A stretch of 64,000 nt of DNA, taken from contig OZ241826.1 in assembly GCA_965202585.1 (NCBI GenBank), positions 30,690,001 through 30,754,000 on the forward strand, written 5' to 3'. Each line of letters opens with the position of its first letter. Within the stretch, counting starts at the first letter, position 1. The stretch is from Thalia democratica. Lineage: Eukaryota. Below the pieces are notes generated by a model. It was not told the DNA's origin. It saw nothing but the letters and a program-made list of their open reading frames with translations, and did not search any database. Shown piece after piece: positions 11,507 to 45,665 of the stretch. A program made the position numbers and the translations under genes.

Positions 11507-11999
11507 TTAGTTACAAGTTGTATTGTTAGTAGACGGGTTTAAACAAATAAACTCATTTACTATTGGATAGCAAGGTCCGTTGTAGTTAGTGTGCATTCCT
11601 CTTACGCTTTCTGGATAAGTACCAAAGTAAGTATTCCAACAAGCAGGTAGTTTACCTTTGCTATTGAAAACGTAATGAAATGAACCGTGAACTTTTTCGT
11701 CATAAACAACACCGTTTGTGAACCATCTCGTTTCAGGATCGATCATTTCCAATCCAACAAAATAGCTTCTTCCAATGCCAATGTTTGTACAACCGCTGGC
11801 AAACTTGTGCAGGGCTTCCAAGTCAGCCCTGTTTGTTATTGGAGCTAAAATTCCGCCTTCCTTTTTGCAAAACTTTTTAGCTTCTTTTCTTGTCACCATC
11901 TTTTCCGGGTAAAAAGTAAACTTACCGCTGGTAGTTGTAACTGATGTGTCATCACAGTGTTTGTTTGCAGTCCATTTAGTACGACGACCCATATTATTG
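11507..11999 (-). CDS. C-type lectin-like domain protein (single large exon; 5' exon not located)
   Basis: 161-aa ORF with KFTFY...EAKKFCKKEGGILAPI, YFVGL, C...C...FICL pattern. Acceptor TTTTTTTTTCAG at 12000-12001. No EPN/QPD or WND calcium motifs. Confidence 0.8.
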
Positions 12000-16204: not shown

Positions 16205-16690
16205 CTTTTTTTTTAATTTATCTTAATATATCTATGTAAGTTTCTATAAAAAAAAATAAAAATAAAACTCTTAGGAATTAAAAAAAATATGTTAGAAATT
16301 TATAGTTTTGTACTTTATCAGCTTAATTGACGTAAACTTTGTAGAAATAAAGGTAGTTTTTAAATCTAGAAAAGAAAGTCAAGGGAAAAGATAAAGTACA
16401 TTTATTAATTTAACTAGAAACAGGCAAATAATAATAAGAACTTTAGATCAACGAATTTTTCGAATATAAAAACGCATTGTTTATATGCGGAGGTATAAAT
16501 CATAAAATAAAGAGCAGCATTCAACTGGAATGTTTTAAATTTATTAGGAAAAAATAAGACAATATACTAAAAGCAAATAAAAGATCGTTAATCAAATAAT
16601 CTAATAAATGTCGTTTTCCACAAAATTTTTGAAAAGCTTCAAGTGCTCAATCTTTAATTTTTATTCCTAAGTTATGCTTTAATTTAAATA
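16205..16690 (-). repeat. Degenerate paralog of the EYA-like last exon and 3' region (matches about 19040-19515)
   Basis: Shared blocks ATCAGCTTAATTGACGTAAAC and CAAATAATCTAATAAATG. Residual coding LKLFKNFVENDIY* versus LKLFKSFLETNIY* in copy B, with upstream stops. Confidence 0.7.
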
Positions 16691-16947
16691 CTGTAACAAA
16701 TCACAAATAAAAATAATAAAGCTAAAGTGAAAAACCATAAAACAGTTTCAGATATAAAAATATAAAAGTCATAAAAAGAATCTTCCGTCAACGAATTTTT
16801 AAAAATTTTAAGAAGTATAATTTTCAAGCTATGTTTTGGAAATAGAGTACTTTATATAACTAAGTAAATAAAAAGTTTTAGAAAATTTTGAAGTAATATT
16901 TGAAGATTGAGGGTGTTTTCAAAGGAAGAAAAATATTTTACAAGCAA

Positions 16948-18698
16948 TCAGATTCCCAAACACTGTTTGGCCGAACTCAAGTGTGACATTTTATTAACTT
17001 CGAACATACTTGTGTTGCTCTGTAAAATAAAAAAAACGGTTTATTTATTTATACACTATAAACATAAGTAACTTAAAAAATGTAGTATTATGTAAGTTAA
17101 ATGACTAATTTTGTTGTTGCTTATAAAAGACTATTTTAAACTAACATTAACTATCATAATTTTTATAGGAAATAAATAATTTACAAAAACCTTAGATTTA
17201 CAACGTTTTTACTTTTTAGTTTGTTAGTAAGTAAGTATGTATCATTTTTAGCTTTTAATACTCGAAAGAAATATATGTTGTAGTAAAATTTGGTAATTAA
17301 ATTTAAAAAATAAGATACTTTATTGACTTAGTTGTAAAATATAAACAGCTCTAATTGTAAAATTCCCAAAAATATGCTTTTTTTACCTCAAGTAAACCTG
17401 ATCTTTTAAAGTTAATTTCAAATTTACAACTTTATAAAACTTTTTCAGTTTATATAAAAAACTGATAAGTTATTTTGAAGTTTCTGCTAAAACACGTAGA
17501 TGTCTTTTATGTACATTTACTTTAATTATGTATACTTGTTATTTGAATTATACTTTAATATTACTATATACTTTATATATAACTAAATTTACTAACCGCA
17601 CGGGCATGCTGCCGAGTATCACCGCTTCCAATCACGACATACGAAGTGTTTTTGTTTCCGTATTTCCCCTTAATGCGGTCGTACAGTGAGCTCTTGCCCA
17701 CCTTGTGAGAGCTGTACACGTCCGCAATGTCCACGTACCGGTCGAGACCGAACACTACGAGCTTGGACACCGCCTCCACCAATTTGCTGTTCGTACAAAT
17801 CACTATCTTGGCTCCTAGTCTGTTTAGATTTTTTTTTTGTTTTCGCAGCAGTTTAAAAATTTAGTTTTTTGCAGTTTGTTGTATAATGAGCTTTTGGAGT
17901 TTTAGAAAGTAGTTTTTCTTAACAAGTTTACTAAACTTATTTATTATATTTAAACAGACGGTTTCTATTTATTGCATTTTTTGTATGACAAGGGTACATG
18001 TATGGCCTTTGATTTGGGTCCATTATTTAGTTTTTAAAATCACTAAGCAAGTTGTTATATAGTTTTTAAGCTAAAAGCAAAACATAACCTTAAAAATATT
18101 TCACAAGCATCTTTCACACTAATTTGATTTGTCAACAAAATTTTCAAACTCACTTCGAAACTAGTATGTCCAATAATGCGGCGGACATCTTCAACCACGT
18201 CTTGCTCGGACCGGTCATCTTCTGGTTGTTCTTCTCCAGGGTCCTCTTGGCCGTCAGCACCCCGTCCCTTTCCCCTGTCGGCCCTTGAAGTTGTTGTAAG
18301 TATCCCGGATGTGACGGTATCTGTGATGGTAGTTTTAAAATGGTTGCCTGCGCTAAACATTAAAAACTTTAAAAGTGCACGTGAAATGACTTCCGGAAGT
18401 GTTCATGAAACTAAGTTTCATAATATTTTTACGTTTCATATAAATAAAAACCATAAAAAATAAAAGGTTGTGAAAATTTAAAACCACAAAAAACCACTAA
18501 CGTCAGCTAAAATATTTTTATATCAGTTTTAAAACACAGATCGAGCAAACTATACTTAAAAAGCTTTTGTTACTTTTAAATTTGACATACTTTTACTCAA
18601 AGTATCTACATAAGTCAATAAAATAGAAAATTATACAAATAGCTACAAGTTTTTACCTGAAAGCCATTTTTCTCATCCAATCAATGCTATTTAATAGT
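16948..18698 (-). pseudogene. Tandem partial duplicate of EYA-like gene 3' exons (copy A), one frameshift
   Basis: Exons 18698-18657 (LNSIDWMRKMAFR fragment), 18320-18154 (YRHIRDTYNNF...TGPSKTWL; 167 nt, one base short in the GGGGAAAGGG run), 17819-17597 (LGAKIVICTNSKL...YVVIGSGDTRQHARA) and 17019-16948 (SNTSMFEVNKMSHLSSAKQCLGI*). All have GT-AG boundaries; exon 5-7 phases match copy B. Confidence 0.8.
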
Positions 18699-19432: not shown

Positions 19433-22400
19433 CTAATAAATGTTGGTTTCCAAAAAACTTTTGAATAACTTCAAGTCTCCCATCTTGCGTATTGGAACGA
19501 AAGTTGTGATGCTCTGTAAAAAGTAAGTAAATGTTAATATTAATAAGACTACTGAATATAAAACGTTTTAAAATATTACAAAATAAACGTACAACACTTT
19601 TTGGGTTTACATTTAAACTAATAAATTGTATTTTTTCTAGTAACGTTTTACTTTAACTTGAGTTAGGTGTCATCTAAGTAAGAACAAATATGTTATGCAC
19701 TAAAAAGGTTTTTTAGAAATTAAGTTATGAAATAAAAATTTGAGTACCTTTACTTTTAGCCTGTTAAGACCACATCAGTATATAACAAACTTGAAAAATT
19801 TCGGATTTAGAAAATGCTTCTAACTATAATTTTCAGGTTTAATGGAAATTAATATGAAAATCTAACCTGTTGGGCGTGCTCTTTGCTGTTCACAGTCCCA
19901 ATAACCACATACGAGTTGTTGTCTCCGTACTCTTTCTTGATGCGTGCGTACACGGAGCTCTTGCCCACCACTTGAGAGCTGTACACGTCTGCAATGTCCA
20001 CGTACCGGTCCAGACTGAACACCACAAGCTTGGACGCCGCATCCGACAATTCGCTGTTCGTACAAATCAAGTTCTTGGCTCCTGGTCTGTTGAGAAAAAA
20101 TACAATATCTTGGTGTCTGATCTAATCAATGAGTTATAACTTTATTTCAAACTTAAACTACTTGTTAGACCAAGGCATATAGAATAGAAAAAAAAAAGTT
20201 AATAAAAGCAACGTTTATAAGCAAAATGTTTAAATAAAAAAATCTATTATATAAATTAATAGTTTATGATTGATTTTAGTTAGTAAAAAGAAGATCAAAC
20301 TTGTTAGATATAATATTGAGAACGGCTGTGGACGCATCCAACCACTTCTTAGCCGGTCCGGTCATCATCCGTTCCTTGTTTCTTGCACATTTCTCCTTGG
20401 CGTCTCCCACCTCGTTCGGTTCTCCTTGCCAGCTCTGGAACTTCTTGTAGGTGTCACGGATCATGCGGTACCTAAAATGTTGTGTGGACGAGTTTTTTTT
20501 TTAAACTCACTTATGAATGGTACAATAAAACTTTCTTGATGCTAAACTGTTTGCACATATTATTGAGATTTTTATTTAGAATAAAGGCAACAGTAAAATT
20601 AAATATGAAATGAAAGCTGTTGATACTTTTAATCGAAACAAAATAAAAGTGGATGCCAACCTGAACGCTAATTTTTGTAGGAAACCAGTTGAGTTTTGTT
20701 CTAAATGAGTTTCTGGGGCATGGAGAGCAGTGTTGTTAAATCCATCTTGGAAGAAATCGTAATTGGACAGGTCTATGTTAAAGTTGTCGTCTTCCGAAAC
20801 ATCTTCTACATTGGGCTGGCCGTTATTCTGAACAAATAGTTTTTTTTTTCAAATATATTTATTTTTATGATTTATCTTGACGAATATTTTTACAACTCAA
20901 AATCTATAAAGTTTAGTTTAATATAATTGAGCCTATAATTACACCAATTAAAAAAAATTGAGTCATAAAATTGATATTGAAAAATGTTGCAGTATTTAGT
21001 TATTTTAACATAAGTGATGCATGATATAAAGCTAATGTTTATTTATTAGCGCTTCATAGCATTTACAGCACTTCTTTTTAATAAATAGTTCTTTTGTCTA
21101 ATTATTAAAAGTTCTACCTTCAAATGTTTTTTTGTCCGCCTTACATTAATAACATATTAATTGTAATGAGTTAAAAACGTAATAAAATCTCAACACAACA
21201 TAACTTCTTAAAATTTAATTAAGTGAAAATCGTTCTAAGATGTCAATTAAACTTCTAATATTTATTATTTATTATTTAATATTTATAAAAAATTCTTTTC
21301 TAACACTTAAAAACACTTGAAATGGTTTATATGCAACATAATGTATTTATGTTACAGGATTTGAATTGATTAGGCAAACAATTGTTAATTTGTTTTTATC
21401 AACATTTTACTGTTGCTTTAAAAAAAGATGTTGTTTATACTAAGTTTATAGCTTTCTTTTAGTTTAAAGGCAATCTTAACATTTACATTGGTATAACATT
21501 ACATATTTTGCAGTTCATAATTGATTTAATATACATAAAGGATGTCATGTCACAGATTAATATTTTTACATATAAAGATTTAAGTACAAATATGTGCTTA
21601 GATAAAAATATAAATTTAATGTATGAGTTTAGAATGTTTTTATTCAAATTAAAAGGCAGCTCTTTGAGTAAATTCTTTAAAACAGTGTGCGTGTTAAAAG
21701 ACATTTTGACGCTGCTATTGTATTATACGAACAACGAAAAAACTTATTATGTAAACAATACTAGACACTCTGAAACAAACTTCAAGATCGTTCTTGAAGA
21801 AGAAGTTGTGTCCGATGTAGTTTATCATGTCAATTGACCACTCCAACAACATTTTGGTGTCATTCTGTTCCTTATAACTCAATGCAAGCGTTATTGCTGC
21901 TCCAAACACTTTGTTGTCCGGTATAAGCACGTCATTTAAGTCGAATATGTACACTCTCTGTATATAACATGTATTTTAATACAACTGATAAATATTTAAT
22001 ACGTTTTGTATATCTTTATTTATTAACGATGTTATGTATATGTTGAGGTTGACTAATTTTTGAAATACTCCTTTTCGCTGAAAAGATAGGCAATGTTCAA
22101 CTTTAAATAATCGAATTATAAGTAGCAAGTTGATCTTAGCAAAAAGTGTATTCGATAAAACCACCTTTTTTTTTATGTTTGAGAAAAAAAACAAGCATAC
22201 TTATAACATCCGTTGTTTATATTCATAATAGTTTTTGATACGACAATGTCTACTAAAGGCAGTATAAACTATGGTTTAGAAAATATGATCAATAATTGTA
22301 TTAAACATTAGTTGAAAAATTATAAACAGCTGTTATAAATAGCGTAGCATTTTACTCTTTAGTAGTTACTTCAAACTAGTAAAACTATTTTTCTTTGCAA

Positions 22401-23768
22401 ACCTCAGCAAAAAAACTGCCCTTAAGAAACTTAGCTAACAAGTGTTAAGTAGTGAACTACACTTAACTAAACAACTTCAGACAAACTTTTTTAGAGGGAG
22501 GTACTATGGGTTGCTGGGTACCATTCCTTCTTTTTCTTGCTTTCTTGTTAAAATACGTTGATGGGTACCTCATCTCAAAACTCATAAAAGTTTGAGCTGA
22601 AAATGATTGATTTATAAACTTATTGTTTACTTTCTTATGTTAAAATTATATAATAAAATTATTAAAAATATCTATTACAAGCTCTCTTGCATGTATGTAT
22701 ACAATAAAAATAAACTAAATGAATGCTATTGACATTTATTAAAGAACTTTTTTAGTGAATTGAAGTGAAAATAAAACTGTTAAACTCAGACACAGAAAAA
22801 AGTATGCAAAAAAAACATTGCAAATGTACGTGTTTTAAAATATTTAAAAGCCAAAACTTAAAATTAAACTACAAACCTTCAGCTATCGGTAACATCGTAT
22901 ACTTTTTTATTTGTTGTGGTACCAAATTAACCGTATTGTTCAAAGTAGTCATTTGGTTTGAAACAGCTGGCGGGTTAGAATTGGCTTGATGGTCCATACT
23001 ACCTTGATTGTAAACCATCGAACTGTTACTTGCTTGGGGCTGATCAAAGTTTGCCAGCTGGGGGTAATTTGTACTTGCCTGAGAGTAAGTTGGACTTCTT
23101 ACCCGGGAGCCATTTCGGAAGCTTAATTTATGGTTATTGGAGACAGATACTTGGGGTTGAGAAACCCGAAATTGGTTAATCACCGAATTGTTGCTTGCTT
23201 GAGGTTGATTCACACTCACATCAGTCACCAACAGGTAATTAGATGTGCTCGCTTGAGAGTGAATTGGACTTCTTGCTTGGGAACTACTTGGCACGCTTCC
23301 CTGAGGGTTATTTAGGACAGATATTTGGGGTTGAGGAACTAGAGTTTGGTTGAACACCGAACTGTTGCTTGCTTGAGGTTGATTGGCATTCACATCAGCC
23401 ATCAGGTTGTAATTGGATGTACTCGCTTGAGATTGAATGGGAATTCTTGCCTGGGAGCTACAAAGGGCGCTTATCTGAGCGTTGTTTGGCATCGAGGTGT
23501 TATATGGGGGAGGTATCAAGGGTATAGGAACCCAAAACTGAGGTGGATAGGGGTATAGAGGGTAAATATATTCAAAAAAATAGGGCTTGAATAGGCCGGG
23601 TGCTACGGATAATGGTGACGGAATGTATGAAATCTTGTGGCGACTCACTGTAAAAAAAGTGGACAGCTCTTTGGATACCAACTTGACCTCGATAGGCGTC
23701 TTTAAGGACAGAACAGGAAACAGGCGATCTAATGTGTAAAACGACAGGTTCATCGTGGATTGCCTCAT
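19433..23768 (-). CDS. eya: Divergent Eyes-absent (EYA)-like protein, 7 coding exons, 605 aa, degenerate HAD motifs
   Basis: Exons 23768-22877, 22596-22487, 21957-21781, 20827-20661, 20471-20301, 20086-19867, 19513-19433 sum to 1818 nt, are phase-consistent and stop-free, all GT-AG. P/S/Q/T-rich N-terminus, basic KKARKRRN...PP linker, then RVYIFDLNDVLI (EYA RVFIWDLDETII), FFKNDLE, NVEDVSEDDN, QKLAFR|YR, WL, YSS...GK, YVVIGT, F..I....DL. The start codon is inferred from an in-frame upstream stop. It is probably a paralog rather than the canonical ortholog. Confidence 0.9.
23004..23459 (-). repeat. Intra-exonic tandem repeat, 174-nt (58-aa) unit, about 2.6 copies
   Basis: SSQARIPIQSQASTSNY...NQPQASNSSV, SSQARSPIHSQASTSNY...NQPQASNNSV and SRVRSPTYSQASTNY...DQPQASNSSM at aa 104, 162 and 220. 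Confidence 0.85.
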
Positions 23769-29279: not shown

Positions 29280-32200
29280 ATGGTTATTGTAAAGTGCCCA
29301 ATTCGTAGATGCGAGTTCCAGACGCCAGGTCTATCCGGTGATGTTGTGAGTAGCCTTCTTAACCTCCACAAAGTGGAGCATCAGCAAAATTCTGAGTTAT
29401 CCAATAATGGAGTAATGCCAAATGCACCTAAATTGATTCGACCAAGGGTTGACCGGGGGATCAGCCAAGAGACATGGCTTGCTTTCATTCGAAGGTGGGA
29501 GGCATTCAAGATTGGTTCGAATATAAGCAACCAAAACGCAAGCATACAGCTTTTTCAGTGTGCGCAGGACAAACTTGGCGATCTTATGTTAGCAAGTGAT
29601 CCTCGACTGATGGCCAAATCAGAAAGTTACGTTGCTAAACTGATGGCGTCGATTGCAGTCATAAAAGTTGCTATTGGTGTAAAGAGAGCAGAACTTATGA
29701 ACCTACATCAGGACCATGATGAACCATTTAGAACGTTTGCCACACGTGTACGAAGCAAAGCAGAAACCTGCAATTTCACTACAGTCAGTGAGTGTGACTG
29801 TGGGAAAAGCAATGTGACGAGCTACACAGAAGAAGCAATAAAAGACGTGATGCTCGCTGGCGTTGGGGATGATGACATAAGAAGAGAAGTTCTCAGTACT
29901 GAAGATATCTTATCAAGGTCATCATTTGATATAATTTCCTTTATTGAAAGTAAAGAAATGGGACGCAATGCAACTGAGAATTCGCGGACCATATCTGCAG
30001 TCTCTTCCTTTCAACGTCAGAAGAAGGGACGTGTCAATATAGGAGATAAGTCCCAACATGTTCCGTGCCAGAACTGTAAAAGACTTTTCTATCCTTTCAA
30101 CGAAAAAGGTAACCAAAATAAAAAGCCTTTCAGATATTGTCTATCTTGTTGGCGTAGTCAATCAAAAAGGGTTAATGCTGTTCAAATCCAAGCTGATCGT
30201 TCTGATTTTATGCAACAAGATACTCAAATAATGTCACTACACGCAAGTAAAAGAATTATGTTGAATAACACCATATTCAGCAAGAAGTCCTTGCGTAAAG
30301 CCAAGGCAACGACTGATCATCCTCGTGCATCAGTCAAGATTGCTAGACATGGCACAAACAAGTTTGCATGGGTAAGTGCTTTAGCTGATACTGGAGCACA
30401 GTCGAACCTTTGGGGCTGGAAAAACTTTCAGGAGGCTGGTTTTTGTAAGAAGGATTTAATGCCTGTATCCATCACAATTCGGGCTGCCAATAAAATTCCT
30501 ATTAACATTCTAGGGGCTTTTAAAGCGACTTTCAGCGGAATGTCTCCAAAGAAGGAGGTTATCAGATGTGATGGAATTGTTTATGTAAGCGATTCAGTGA
30601 CCGGATTCTTTCTCTCCTATGAAACCATGGTTGACCTCCTGATTATTAATAAGGATTTTCTCACCATTGGATCTCAACTGCCTCATCAGCATTCTGAAGT
30701 TGCTGTAAGTTCAAATGAAAATGATCCGAATAAACTGGACTCGCATAAAGATGTGACCTGTGATTGCACGCCAAGGAGTAGAGTGCCAGACCGACCAAAC
30801 AAACTTCCGTTTGAGGCAACAAATAAAAACGTGAGCAAAATGCGTGATTGGCTCTTACAAAGGTACGCAACTTCAACGTTTAATGTATGTCTACATAAAT
30901 TACTCCAGCAAATGAGTGGACCTCCACTTGAGATACATTTGGAGAATGATGCTAAACCACGTGCTTGTCATACACCAGCTCACGTGCCAATTCATTGGCA
31001 GAAACAGGTTGAAGCAGATCTCATTCGAGATGTGAGGTTGGGTGTCTTAGAACGTGTCCCATTTGGTGAACCTGTAAGCTGGTGTCACCGCATGGTGGTC
31101 ACCAGGAAACAGGATGGGTCACCTAGGAGGACAGTAGATCTCTCACCACTTAACAAGTATTGCAATAGGGAGACGTGCGCTACAGATACTCCGTTTAAAC
31201 TAGCGCGCAGAATTCCAAAGGGAACGTTCAAGACTGTAACAGATGCATGGAACGGGTATCATGGAGTTCCACTGAGAGAAAGTGATAAACACCTCACTAC
31301 ATTTATCACTCCGTTTGGCAGGTTCCGATATACTAGAGCACCTCAAGGCTTTGTATCATCTGGTGATGGTTACAATCGACGATTTGCAGCTATTTTATCT
31401 GATTTTGAAAGAAAGGAGAGGTGTGTTGATGACACCATATTTTTTGATTCAGAATTAGAGTGTCACAGATGGCGAACAATAGATTTTCTGTCAAAAGATG
31501 GTAATGCAGGCATCATTCTAAATCCAAAGAAATTCCAGTTTTGTCAAAAGTCCGTTGATTTTGCTGGATTTAGAATTTCTGATGAACGTATAGAACCTCT
31601 GCCCAAATATCTGGATTCCATTCGCAATTTCCCAACCCCAAAGTCTGCCACAGATATACGCAGCTGGTTTGGTCTGATAAATCAAGTCGCAAATTATGCC
31701 AAACTTCGTAAAGTCATGGCACCGTTCAGAGATTTTCTCAGTCCAAAATGTAAGTTTATGTGGACAGAAAAATTAAACCAATCATTTAATGAATCAAAAG
31801 AGATAATCATTGACGCAATAAAGAGCGGTGTTCAAAGTTTTGATCTTGGGAAACTGACTTGTCTTAGACCAGACTGGTCAAAGCAAGGATTGGGCTACTT
31901 CCTTATGCAGAAACACTGCAAATGCAATAGCCGGTTACCAGATTGCTGCACCACCGGCTGGAAAGTGACGCTTGCAGGTTCAAGGTTTCTGAATGGGGCA
32001 GAAAAGAATTATGCTGCCATAGAAGGGGAGTCGCTTGCTATTGCTTGGTCATTAGAACAGACAAAGTATTTCACTAAGGGCTGCAAAGATCTTGTGGTTG
32101 TTACGGATCATAAACCACTGGTAAAGATTTTTGGTGATCGCACCTTAAACGAAATTCACAACACGCGCATTTTTAGGCTCAAACAACGTACTTTGCCATG

Positions 32201-33854
32201 GCTTTTTCAAGTGCATTACATGCCAGGTAAAACTAATCTAGCGGCAGATGCTGCATCGCGTTATCCAAGCTCGATTAATGAAGTTAATTCACATGATAAT
32301 GATTTGACTAACGAATCACTTCTAATTGCTTCATTGAGTAATGAAGTATGCCATTCAATGGCAATCACTTGGGAGGAAATTGTAGAAGAGACACTAAATG
32401 ACAAAGTTCTTTCAAGAGTATCCAGGTGTGTTGAGGAAGGTCGAAGCTTGAAACATGATGAGTCTTTGTCAGCGTATTTTAGATACGATGATGCATTGTA
32501 CTTAAGTGATGGGGCTATACTTTACAAGGACAGAGTAGTAATCCCCGTCAGTTTACGATATCGGGTCCTCAACAAGTTACACTCGGCGCACCAAGGAGTC
32601 ACATCAATGCATACTCGTGCCCAACAGATTGTCTTCTGGCCTGGTATTACACAAGACATTGAAGCAATTCGGGCCAATTGTAAAAGCTGCAACCGCAATT
32701 CACCTTCTCAACCATCATTACTACAAGAAGCATCTGATCCTCCTACAAACCCTTATGAAAAAATATTCGCAGAATTTTTCCAGTTTGCCGGAAACAATTT
32801 TTTGGTAGTCGGTGACAGGTTGTCAGGTTGGTCGGAAATATTTTCCACACCCAGCGGAACCTCTCAGGCAGGTTCACGTGGGTTGATTAAGTGCCTCCGA
32901 GTTTTGTTTTCCAGGTTTGGAGTACCTGAGTAAATATCGAGTGATGGTGGACCGGAATTTACGTCCAGTGCAACAAAGGAATTCCTTAAAACCTGGGATG
33001 TCACGCATCGAATATCTTCAGCTTACTATCAAAGATCAAACGGCAGAGCGGAAGTAGCCGTCAAACAGGTAAAAAGGTTGCTAAGATCAAATGTTGACGC
33101 TTCAGGAAGTCTGGACAATGACAAGTTTTTAAGTGCGTTGCTCCATCTGAGAAATACTCCTAATAGCGATTGTCAAGTGTCTCTAGCCGAGATCATATAT
33201 GGACGTCAGCTGCGAGATAGTTTCTCATTCTTGAACAAACTTCACAAATTCTCCAATCCTAATGTGCGACCCATGTGGAGAAAAGCATGGAAGCTTAAAG
33301 AAGAGGCGCTCCGTACAAGGTTTGTTAAGAATTCAGAAGTACTTAACCAAAGAGCCAGGGATTTGCTGCCTCTCTATGTTGGCAGTAGGTGTTTACTACA
33401 GAACCAGAGTGGCACTCATCCACGTAAATGGGACAGAAGCGGAGTGATAATGGAGGTGCTTCCACATGATCAGTATGTAGTCAGAGTTGATGGTTCACGG
33501 AGACTTACTCGGAGGAACAGAAAATTTTTAAGGATGTACAACCCAGCCTCAACAAGCATTGAAGCAAAAAATTCCCATGGTTGGAGCAGTAATCTACCAA
33601 GCTCACATGAGTGCAATGTTGGTCCTCAACGTCCTGATTCTACTGTAAAGATTACAGAGGATTCCAACAGTGCCAATAGTGGTAAAACCAGTGAGGTTGA
33701 AGCGGATCATGAAGAGGTTGAGGAAGAGTACATTCCTGCTCCTATAGTTCACAAAAAAAATAAGGTGCCGCTTGCTTTGCGTAGGTTGAAAGACTTCAAT
33801 GCGCCAGGGAGGCTTGAAAGTGGAGTACTCCAAAGTAGAAATCACCGTAAGTGA
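29280..33854 (+). pseudogene. Single gag-pol polyprotein ORF interrupted by one in-frame TAA (32931-32933) in integrase
   Basis: Protease ADTGA; RT ...TTFITPFGRFRY...PQG...CVDD; RNase H DWSKQGLG...YAAIEGE...TDHKPL; integrase HHCC (LHSAHQG...CKSC) and FGVPE*ISSDGGPEF...SNGRAE. The 33078 ORF is in the same frame as the 29280 ORF. Confidence 0.95.
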
Positions 33855-44229: not shown

Positions 44230-45665
44230 TTACCAAGTGTTCTTGCAACCAAACGGTGCAGGAACTTCTACGAACGCGTACTTCGAGAAAGTGGTGGCTG
44301 TTACGTCACAACTTTCAACCGACCAATCGCGTGCTTCCACGTCGTAAATCGCCTTTTTCTGGCAGCATTTTAAAAATACAACCAATTGGCTTCCCCGAAT
44401 CGAAACGGCGCACGCGCGCCGACCGAGGTCAACTTTCACGGGCGGCGTTCTCAGAAACACGAAGTGGTCGCAGATGGAGTCGAAGAGCTCGCAGGTCGCG
44501 GGCCCGCCGCCGAACACGAATAACTTGTTTCCGATCGTAGCTAGCTGACAGTCCGTTCTTTGCTCGATCATTCTCGGCATGAAAGTCCACTCGTCGGCTG
44601 CGCTGTCGTACGCTTCCACGCTCGACAAAATCCTCCTGTTTTGGATGTTGCCCTGATCCTGCAATCCGCCGCACACCACAACCTTGCCTCTAAAAACCGC
44701 GCTTCCCGCTTGCGCTCTCGACTCCTGCAGCCTACCGACTTCCTTTAACCCGTACCTTTTCGCATCAAACCTGACGCAGCGAGCCTCTGTAAAATTTTCA
44801 AACATGTCACACCACCAGCCGCCGATTACGTAGATGTGGCCCATGAAGGCGCACAAGCCGAAGTAGTCCGCAAATAGGTCCAGGTCAGGCAGGTCTTGCC
44901 ACTCTTGTTCGCCAAGCGGCAATTTTTTAACCTGGATGTTCTGCGTGTTGTTTTCACTGCCGCCGAAAACGTAAATACAGCCGTCCACGCACGCCGAAGC
45001 CCAGAACTCCCGGTATTGAGGAAACTCCAAATCTGCGCATTTCTTCACCGAGCCATTTCTCCCGTAAATTCGCTGCACGGACTGGGTCATGCTGCATATG
45101 TTCCTGCCGCCGACGACCACTAGGTCCAAGTCGTCGCAGCGCCTCGGCTTAATATCCTTGTTTCGGGTTTTCCCCTTCAAGACGTCGTCGATCAGCGAGC
45201 TGCAAGTTTCGCATCTCCGAAACGCCAAAGACTCATTTAAAAATTGATCCAGTTCGCGATTGGAAAGCAGAGGAAGACGGACTTTCACGAGGAGGCGTGT
45301 TGAATACTTGCGCCTCTCCGCGCCTCCGAAGCTCACCCAGCGGTCGGCGACGCGAAGCACCTCCATCTCCGACGTGACTTTCAGCTTTGAACTGGACAAA
45401 ATTGCGCTCAACAGCGCGAAATCGAGATGCAGGAAATTTTGGCTTCCGGCAACTGCGACGAAGAAGCGCTCAATGCAGCGCAATGTCGCATTTGAAAATG
45501 AGGGCATGCCGAATGTTTTCGCCACCTTGTGGTAAGTCGCCACGTTTTCGAGGTTCATTTTGTCGCTCATGAGCTCGACGATGTCTCGTTTCACGCTTTC
45601 GTCTAAAATGAAATGTTCGGGATCGAAAGGATGAAACGTTTTACTCCGGTCGTTTCTCGTTGTTC
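44230..45665 (-). CDS. Kelch-like protein: BACK domain plus about 6 Kelch blades (large exon; upstream exon not located)
   Basis: Acceptor TTTTCACAG at 45666, 1436-nt open exon. BACK motifs (FLHLDFALLSAILSSSKL.V.SEMEV...W, VRLPLL) and Kelch GG motifs (VVVGG, IYVFGG, IYVIGG, VVCGG, LFVFGG) with VEAYD...W. Markedly GC-rich versus flanks. Confidence 0.9.

Follow-up and report, generated by a model that had tools for sequence, protein, structure and literature searches.

A degenerate, probably non-catalytic EYA gene from a large lineage-specific family of Thalia democratica

The genomic stretch analysed here, hereafter the window, comprises 64,000 nucleotides (nt) of Thalia democratica (assembly GCA_965202585.1, contig OZ241826.1, positions 30,690,001 to 30,754,000), which are very AT-rich outside exons and transposons (20-30% GC). 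Its minus strand carries, at window positions 19433-23768, a gene of the Eyes absent (EYA) type, here named copy B, with a related fragment, copy A, lying directly downstream on the same strand. Copy B is made of seven exons separated by introns that all show GT..AG borders, and reads from an ATG at 23768 to a TAG at 19435-19433 as an open reading frame (ORF) of 1818 nt and 605 amino acids (aa), with 12 of 12 splice sites intact and no break in the 605-codon frame. A previous reading of the letters alone (the sequence-only reading) had already proposed a full ORF with identical limits.

The first exon (22877-23768) encodes 297 aa rich in P, S, T, Q, N and Y, ends at the donor GTTTGT and gave no Pfam domain match. 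It contains a tandem repeat (23142-23461) with a unit of 174 nt (58 aa) present in 1.8 copies that match at 82%, and probably corresponds to the N-terminal activation region of EYA proteins. Exon 2 (22487-22596) adds a basic stretch, KKARKRR, which lies just 5′ of the EYA domain and is conserved in the paralogs. The EYA domain itself starts in exon 3 (21781-21957) with HAD motif I, which reads FDLNDV (21928-21945, within RVYIFDLNDV), where the nucleophilic Asp is retained and the general acid/base Asp two residues further on (D+2) has become Asn. Exon 4 (20661-20827) holds an acidic block, VEDVSEDDN..DLSNYDF, that aligns with the canonical SSDDNGQDLSxYNF, and exon 5 (20301-20471) begins with RYRMIRDTY. 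The remaining HAD motifs are found in exon 6 (19867-20086): motif II is CTNS (20053-20064; canonical VTTT) with its Thr retained, the Gly-Lys of motif III (19960-19965) belongs to VGKSS (canonical TGKES) and keeps the Lys, and motif IV is YVVIGTV (19891-19911, within YVVIGTVNSKE), so that the metal-binding Asp of the canonical YVVIGDG is gone. Finally, exon 7 (19433-19513) encodes the C-terminal helix SITTFVPIRKMGDLKLFKSFLETNIY followed by the TAG, with F-L-E in the place of the canonical A-L-E. Motifs I and IV had been read correctly from the letters alone.

The C-terminal 270 aa of copy B descend from an EYA domain. Exon 6 by itself matches the EYA3 and EYA2 chains of the PDB with E-values of about 5e-6 (4e-6 to 6e-6), the next match being an aspartokinase at 0.9; among solved structures the similarity is specific to EYA, no other HAD family showing it, and the exon 6 profile retrieves canonical EYAs from many phyla. 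The NCBIfam profile TIGR01658 (EYA-cons_domain) recognises exon 6 (3e-11, 43.5 bits) and exon 4 (1e-3, 18.8 bits) and has no match to exon 3 or exon 5 of copy B, which gives, for a domain scored exon by exon, a sum of about 62 bits that lies below the curated whole-domain cut-off of 195.3 bits. Exon 3 alone is too diverged to match anything in PDB, NCBIfam or Pfam. Moreover, four of the five introns within the EYA domain sit at positions that are also interrupted in the eya gene of Clytia hemisphaerica (L049), three of them without any offset and the fourth, at the exon 5/6 junction, with an offset of one or two residues at most. Three of the common introns precede RV[FY]I, the motif II exon and the last exon, respectively, and one follows DLE. 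Both introns flanking exon 3 are among those that coincide; one intron of the family is shifted and four Clytia introns are absent. The EYA-type exon boundaries of the sequence-only reading are thus borne out by comparison with a real eya gene.

Rather than the single extra copy that had been supposed, copy B is a B-type gene within a lineage-specific family that numbers at least 35 loci. A six-frame search with exon 6 through its own assembly (802 Mb in 1833 contigs, about 25% GC; chromosomes are labelled C1, C4, C5, C6 and C9) returned 35 loci at 69-100% identity. Most of them (32 of 35) are gathered in about 1.2 Mb at C1:29.72-30.89 Mb, where ten plus-strand loci up to 30.11 Mb and 22 minus-strand loci from 30.17 Mb form two convergent blocks; the other three map to C1:95.36 Mb (two loci) and C1:15.80 Mb (one). 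An exon 3 search gave 31 family matches at the same places. Among the 29 loci inspected, most of them for exons 4-7 only and ten of them also for the motif I exon, at least three subtypes occur, namely A-type, B-type and intermediate. The A-type comprises five loci, including the copy A fragment, and keeps canonical blocks such as SSDDNGQDLSMYNF, VDWMRKMAF and SSDDNGQDLSxYNF. Splice sites are conserved across the paralogs, and 10 of the 29 inspected loci are broken by stops, frameshifts, truncations or damaged splice sites: the family evolves by birth and death.

The replacement of the acid/base residue is shared by the whole family as far as it was read. Motif I is F-D-L-N-D-V in all ten copies, except for one broken copy with F-N-L-N-D-V, which makes the change of D+2 to Asn an old family trait and not a peculiarity of copy B. 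Motif IV is more variable, with GTV[DN]SK, GTVDSKQ, GTADSKE, GNANSKE or G[SC]GDTRQ in the paralogs, and the canonical G-D-G is absent from every exon 6 copy read. The nucleophilic Asp, the Thr of motif II and the Lys of motif III are all nearly invariant in the family. EYA-type catalysis relies on the nucleophile together with the D+2 Asp in motif I and on the acidic residues of G-D-G-x-x-E-E in motif IV; copy B has Asn at D+2 and reads G-T-V-N-S-K-E in motif IV.

Canonical EYAs recovered in the protein search are almost uniformly WDLDET and GDGxxEE, and the D+2 Asp is invariant among those listed, except for one marine-metagenome EYA that has Glu. The canonical EYA of Hydra vulgaris, however, carries WDLDDV and GSGRDEE. 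Hence Val at position 5 of motif I, or a missing motif IV Asp, is no proof of inactivity when taken alone, and the changes specific to the family are the substitution of D+2 by Asn and the acidic loss in motif IV. Canonical hydrozoan EYAs, that of Hydra included, lack the Asp of the motif IV G-D-G (GSGRDEE, GNRRDEE or GNGKSEE in P0020, P0108, P0130 and P0166), so that even conserved EYAs do not all follow the textbook motifs.

The family has diverged to an unusual degree. Aligned with canonical EYA domains, the domain of copy B reaches 24-30% identity and that of A-type copies 31-35%, whereas canonical cnidarian and bilaterian domains are 58-84% identical among themselves. In an IQ-TREE phylogeny the family is monophyletic (support 100/100); its stem measures 2.77 substitutions per site and the median terminal branch 0.05. 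The description of copy B as an intact and fast-evolving EYA therefore stands. The tree gives the family no firm point of attachment, its position being affected by long-branch attraction; a hydrozoan affinity, which was considered on account of the Hydra-like DDV, GSG and YDQS motifs, was rejected, as the family does not group within Hydrozoa in this tree.

In spite of this divergence, the coding sequence of the family is under purifying selection. The ratio of nonsynonymous to synonymous rates (dN/dS) is 0.03 between two intact A-type genes (27.5 synonymous versus 3.5 nonsynonymous differences), between 0.17 and 0.35 for most of the remaining pairs, and 0.45 for a single one (Fisher p 1e-10 to 3e-16). 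Copy B gives 0.26-0.30 against its nearest intact paralogs, at a dS of 0.44-0.55. It also has a twin at C1:30.19 Mb, 520 kb away, with 98.5% identity over 2.9 kb, and the two differ at 2 of 639 exon columns versus 43 of 2265 non-exon columns (p = 0.002); the differences avoid the exons, which indicates that constraint on copy B is still acting. The family thus combines lost catalytic residues with maintained purifying selection, as pseudoenzymes do, the loss of activity being the inferred part. The two intact A-type genes, L045 (C1:30113709, plus strand) and L035 (C1:30174997, minus strand), face each other at the strand switch of the cluster, and their excess of synonymous over nonsynonymous differences suggests an old inverted duplication under strong constraint.

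EYA is among the most conserved developmental co-factors of animals and is normally single-copy outside vertebrates. The sequence-only reading had placed copy B beside a canonical eya located elsewhere. The whole 802-Mb assembly was searched, by way of a candidate filter, with the TIGR01658 profile and with three canonical EYA domains (from Hydra vulgaris, a canonical-like marine-metagenome EYA and sea urchin); all four queries found only the present family, with best exon scores of 46-59 bits, and left the region of the motif I exon unmatched. Exons of SIX-domain, Ski/Dach and T-box genes are readily found with this tool at 44-73 bits, and an ordinary eya exon ought to have been conspicuous. 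The family thus appears to be the only EYA-domain complement of this genome; the idea of one paralog beside a canonical eya does not hold, and one half of what had been named in advance as evidence against the sequence-only reading, that this is the only eya, seems to hold. A near-intronless, canonical-type marine EYA, P0038/P0371 (ENA metagenome contigs L050-L052), has WDLEDT (Glu at D+2) and, at motif IV, GNARDEE. As the missing eya of this animal it was rejected, since its contigs have 36-37% GC and it has no close match in the genome.

The SIX genes, which encode the usual partners of EYA proteins, are amplified as well. A search for the SIX domain (PF16878) gave 65 exon matches, about 37 of which are C-terminal-half exons over the cut-off, corresponding to about 35 or more loci; three SIX genes are usual for invertebrates. 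Tandem clusters of them occur at C6:37.45-37.69, C4:67.36-67.41, C4:70.46-70.74, C4:75.43-75.52, C5:65.03-65.11 and C6:63.17-63.33 Mb, and elsewhere. The control families are not amplified (about 4 Ski/Dach loci and about 10 T-box loci), and the co-amplification of EYA and SIX is therefore not general to the transcription-factor genes of this genome. The small contigs C1615, C445, C223 and C331 duplicate loci of the large chromosomes (e.g. Ski/Dach and SIX) and are probably haplotigs, for which reason genome-wide counts need care. Published thaliacean genomes measure 743-903 Mb and are AT-rich (PMC13746493; PMC10686999); in the salp and tunicate genome literature that was checked, an amplification of eya or six is not mentioned.

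The explanation regarded as the best, to which we give somewhat better than even chances, is that copy B forms one piece of an amplified, non-catalytic EYA family that serves as a repertoire of SIX partners. Copy B is probably a degenerate, non-catalytic EYA: judged from its motifs, it lacks two of the residues that EYA tyrosine phosphatase activity needs. In this respect the earlier suspicion of a phosphatase-dead protein is upheld, with the difference that the change at D+2 affects the family as a whole and not this copy in particular. The EYA domain would no longer be an efficient tyrosine phosphatase, being either non-catalytic or very slow, and at most it could form or hold a phospho-aspartate or bind a phosphorylated substrate. 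Instead, it may act as a protein-binding module or adaptor whose old pocket is still used for binding, given that the nucleophile, the Thr and the Lys have been retained. The N-terminus, rich in P, S, T, Q and Y, would supply the transcriptional co-activator function, and the likeliest partners would be SIX-type homeodomain proteins, themselves amplified, so that copy B could represent one element of a diversified SIX-EYA partner repertoire. In canonical systems, binding to the SIX domain is a property of the EYA domain and activation of transcription one of the N-terminus (PMC8286820); SIX1 contributes a single amphipathic helix, which fits into a hydrophobic groove on EYA2 (PMC11252760). Drosophila Eya carrying D493N and/or E728Q is reported to be inactive in vitro, and genomic rescue of development by it is complete (PMC3595212), which shows that catalysis is not needed for an EYA to fulfil its co-activator role. 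The family seems to have replaced eya in parallel with the SIX amplification. The full version of this scenario, in which the place of a single ultra-conserved eya was taken by fast-evolving, non-catalytic EYA-like genes, dozens in number and amplified alongside dozens of SIX genes, is advanced as a tentative and rather doubtful proposal.

Several observations weigh against the preferred explanation. The helices that follow motif I are, in the alignment, almost wholly rewritten with respect to canonical EYAs, and the canonical A-L-E near the C-terminus is F-[LV]-E in all copies. Mutation of this Ala in human EYA2 (A532R) is reported to disrupt SIX1 binding; SIX binding of copy B may accordingly be altered or lost. 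The public runs that contain the locus number three and consist of DNA contigs, in which introns are covered and no splice joints occur, with no RNA run among them. A search of 1.84 billion protein representatives with the exon 6 profile yielded no full-length protein of the family; its only four close relatives were single-exon fragments of 73-116 aa in ENA marine metagenome data, including one Tara Oceans sequence, and canonical EYAs scored 56 bits or less. As about one third of the copies have become pseudogenes, each individual copy could be in the course of being lost. Finally, the search for a canonical eya covered one assembly by way of a candidate filter and may not have reached every stretch of it.

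Three other explanations have to be weighed against that of a non-catalytic partner repertoire. The most serious of them, which is nonetheless considered unlikely, supposes that the proteins are still active phosphatases in which the Asp following the Asn of D-L-N-D-V, or some other residue, acts as the acid/base and displaced acids of motif IV bind the metal. Such shifted acidic residues do exist near motif IV, as GTVDSK in many paralogs and GSGD in the A-type, and canonical hydrozoan EYAs that already lack the Asp of G-D-G illustrate the flexibility of this motif; besides, a nucleophile, a Thr and a Lys kept near-invariant by purifying selection are hard to explain in a pocket deprived of any role. 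Copy B, however, has Asn at the shifted position (GTVNSKE) with no conserved Glu after it, and the D+2 Asp is the residue that the canonical EYAs listed do not change, save for the Glu of the marine-metagenome protein. Single substitutions of active-site residues, D493N and E728Q, are moreover reported to abolish the activity of fly or mouse EYA (PMC3595212).

Alternatively, copy B might be a functionless young duplicate within a decaying array, its ORF being open only because too little time has passed. The broken state of 10 of the 29 inspected loci, the 98.5%-identical twin 520 kb away and public runs that consist of DNA contigs without splice joints would all fit a copy of this kind, which is nevertheless judged improbable: dN/dS against the nearest intact paralogs is 0.26-0.30 at a dS of 0.44-0.55, the differences from the twin avoid exons (p = 0.002), and all twelve splice sites and the 605-codon frame are intact. 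About the same small chance is granted to a canonical eya that exists and was missed through an assembly gap, a stretch outside the reach of the search or the search filter, in which case the family would be an accessory set of dominant-negative proteins or competitors, the latter a role also named by the sequence-only reading. The search scores first-look candidates only, and the assembly is divided into 1833 contigs with haplotig-like duplicates among them. Against this stand the outcome of the four canonical queries, with exon scores that do not exceed 59 bits and nothing matching the region of the motif I exon, the ready detection of the conserved exons of SIX, Ski/Dach and T-box genes, and the dN/dS of 0.03 within the A-type, a constraint as strong as that expected of an essential gene.

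When compared with known systems, the family shares with canonical EYAs (Drosophila Eya, vertebrate EYA1-4; TIGR01658; PDB 3GEB, 4EGC, 9N0Y) a C-terminal HAD-type EYA domain of about 270 aa, a low-complexity, P/S/T-rich N-terminus, the Thr of motif II, the Lys of motif III and the blocks DDN.QDLS.Y.F, RK.AFRYR and YVVIG. It departs from them in motif I (D-L-N-D-V versus D-L-D-E-T), in the motif IV of copy B (G-T-V versus G-D-G) and in number, with at least 35 loci versus one and no canonical copy detectable. Hydrozoan EYAs (the Hydra vulgaris XP_047125632-type P0020, Cladonema P0108 and Clytia P0166) resemble the family in the Val at position 5 of motif I and in the G-S-G or G-N of motif IV, and the Y-D-Q-S block of A-type copies recalls that of Hydra. 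On the other hand, they keep both motif I aspartates and the RDEE/EE cluster, are single-copy and are 58-66% identical to other EYAs. Engineered phosphatase-dead Drosophila Eya offers another parallel, as acidic residues of the active site have been replaced and the rest of the engineered protein is intact; in the family, by contrast, the change is natural, old and family-wide, affects D+2 with the nucleophile kept, and occurs in a domain that has diverged massively elsewhere. Pseudophosphatases such as STYX and the inactive myotubularins likewise conserve a phosphatase fold with replaced catalytic residues, are maintained by selection and act by binding, yet they mostly belong to Cys-based folds. 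We know of no pseudophosphatase of the HAD or EYA type, nor of one that has replaced the active enzyme in a genome.

The role of the EYA phosphatase is debated, because phosphatase-dead alleles rescue flies (PMC3595212) and yet the catalytic residues are almost universally kept. The genome of T. democratica offers a natural experiment on EYA catalysis: what appear to be its only EYA-type genes number 35 or more, have Asn in place of the acid/base Asp wherever this was read and are still under purifying selection, and the SIX partner genes have been amplified in parallel. If the full, rather doubtful scenario given above is true, the tyrosine phosphatase activity of EYA would be dispensable for an animal, shown in nature, and a combinatorial SIX-EYA partner code could operate, perhaps tied to the alternating body forms of this pelagic animal. 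The family could be used to address which EYA functions need catalysis, how co-factors and transcription factors co-diversify, and how developmental networks are rewired in fast-evolving pelagic tunicates.

As for the neighbouring copy A (16601-18688, minus strand), it is a 5′-truncated and frameshifted pseudogene fragment of an A-type member. It retains the tail of exon 4 (18656-18688), i.e. the last 11 codons, together with exon 5 (18154-18320), exon 6 (17597-17819) and exon 7 (about 16601-16654), and has no motif I exon, given that a mere 745 bp separate the exon 4 remnant from the end of copy B on its upstream side. In exon 5, a 1-bp deletion near 18270 shifts the frame when compared with the intact relative L035; L035 and L045, both intact A-type genes, possess these exons too and lack the deletion. 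The GSGD that the sequence-only reading had cited for copy A is indeed present in its exon 6, but it belongs to a fragment whose motif I exon is gone and whose frame is broken. Copy A does not represent an alternative cassette.

Far more distant genes with EYA domains were also observed. Two of them, at C1:85061215-85061478 (minus strand) and C1:85213002-85213241 (plus strand) (L022-L024), have FDLDDLVVP as motif I, which keeps both aspartates, and FGAKEENE in the motif IV region, the 85.06-Mb copy having in-frame stops. Two extremely diverged EYA-like genes at C9:34031879-34032046 and C9:34095010-34095177, both on the plus strand (L025-L028), show FDLEDV[LM]VP as motif I.

Three further ORFs were noted in the rest of the window. 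A Gypsy-type polyprotein ORF of 1217 aa with reverse transcriptase, RNase H and integrase domains lies at 29280-32933 on the plus strand, and a 161-aa ORF at 11510-11992 on the minus strand gives a borderline match to the C-type lectin domain (22.9 bits versus a cut-off of 22.6). The third, at 44233-45594 on the minus strand, is an intronless ORF of 454 aa with BACK and Kelch-repeat regions, whose closest relatives (at most 72% identity) are all marine-metagenome proteins and which may belong to another amplified family.

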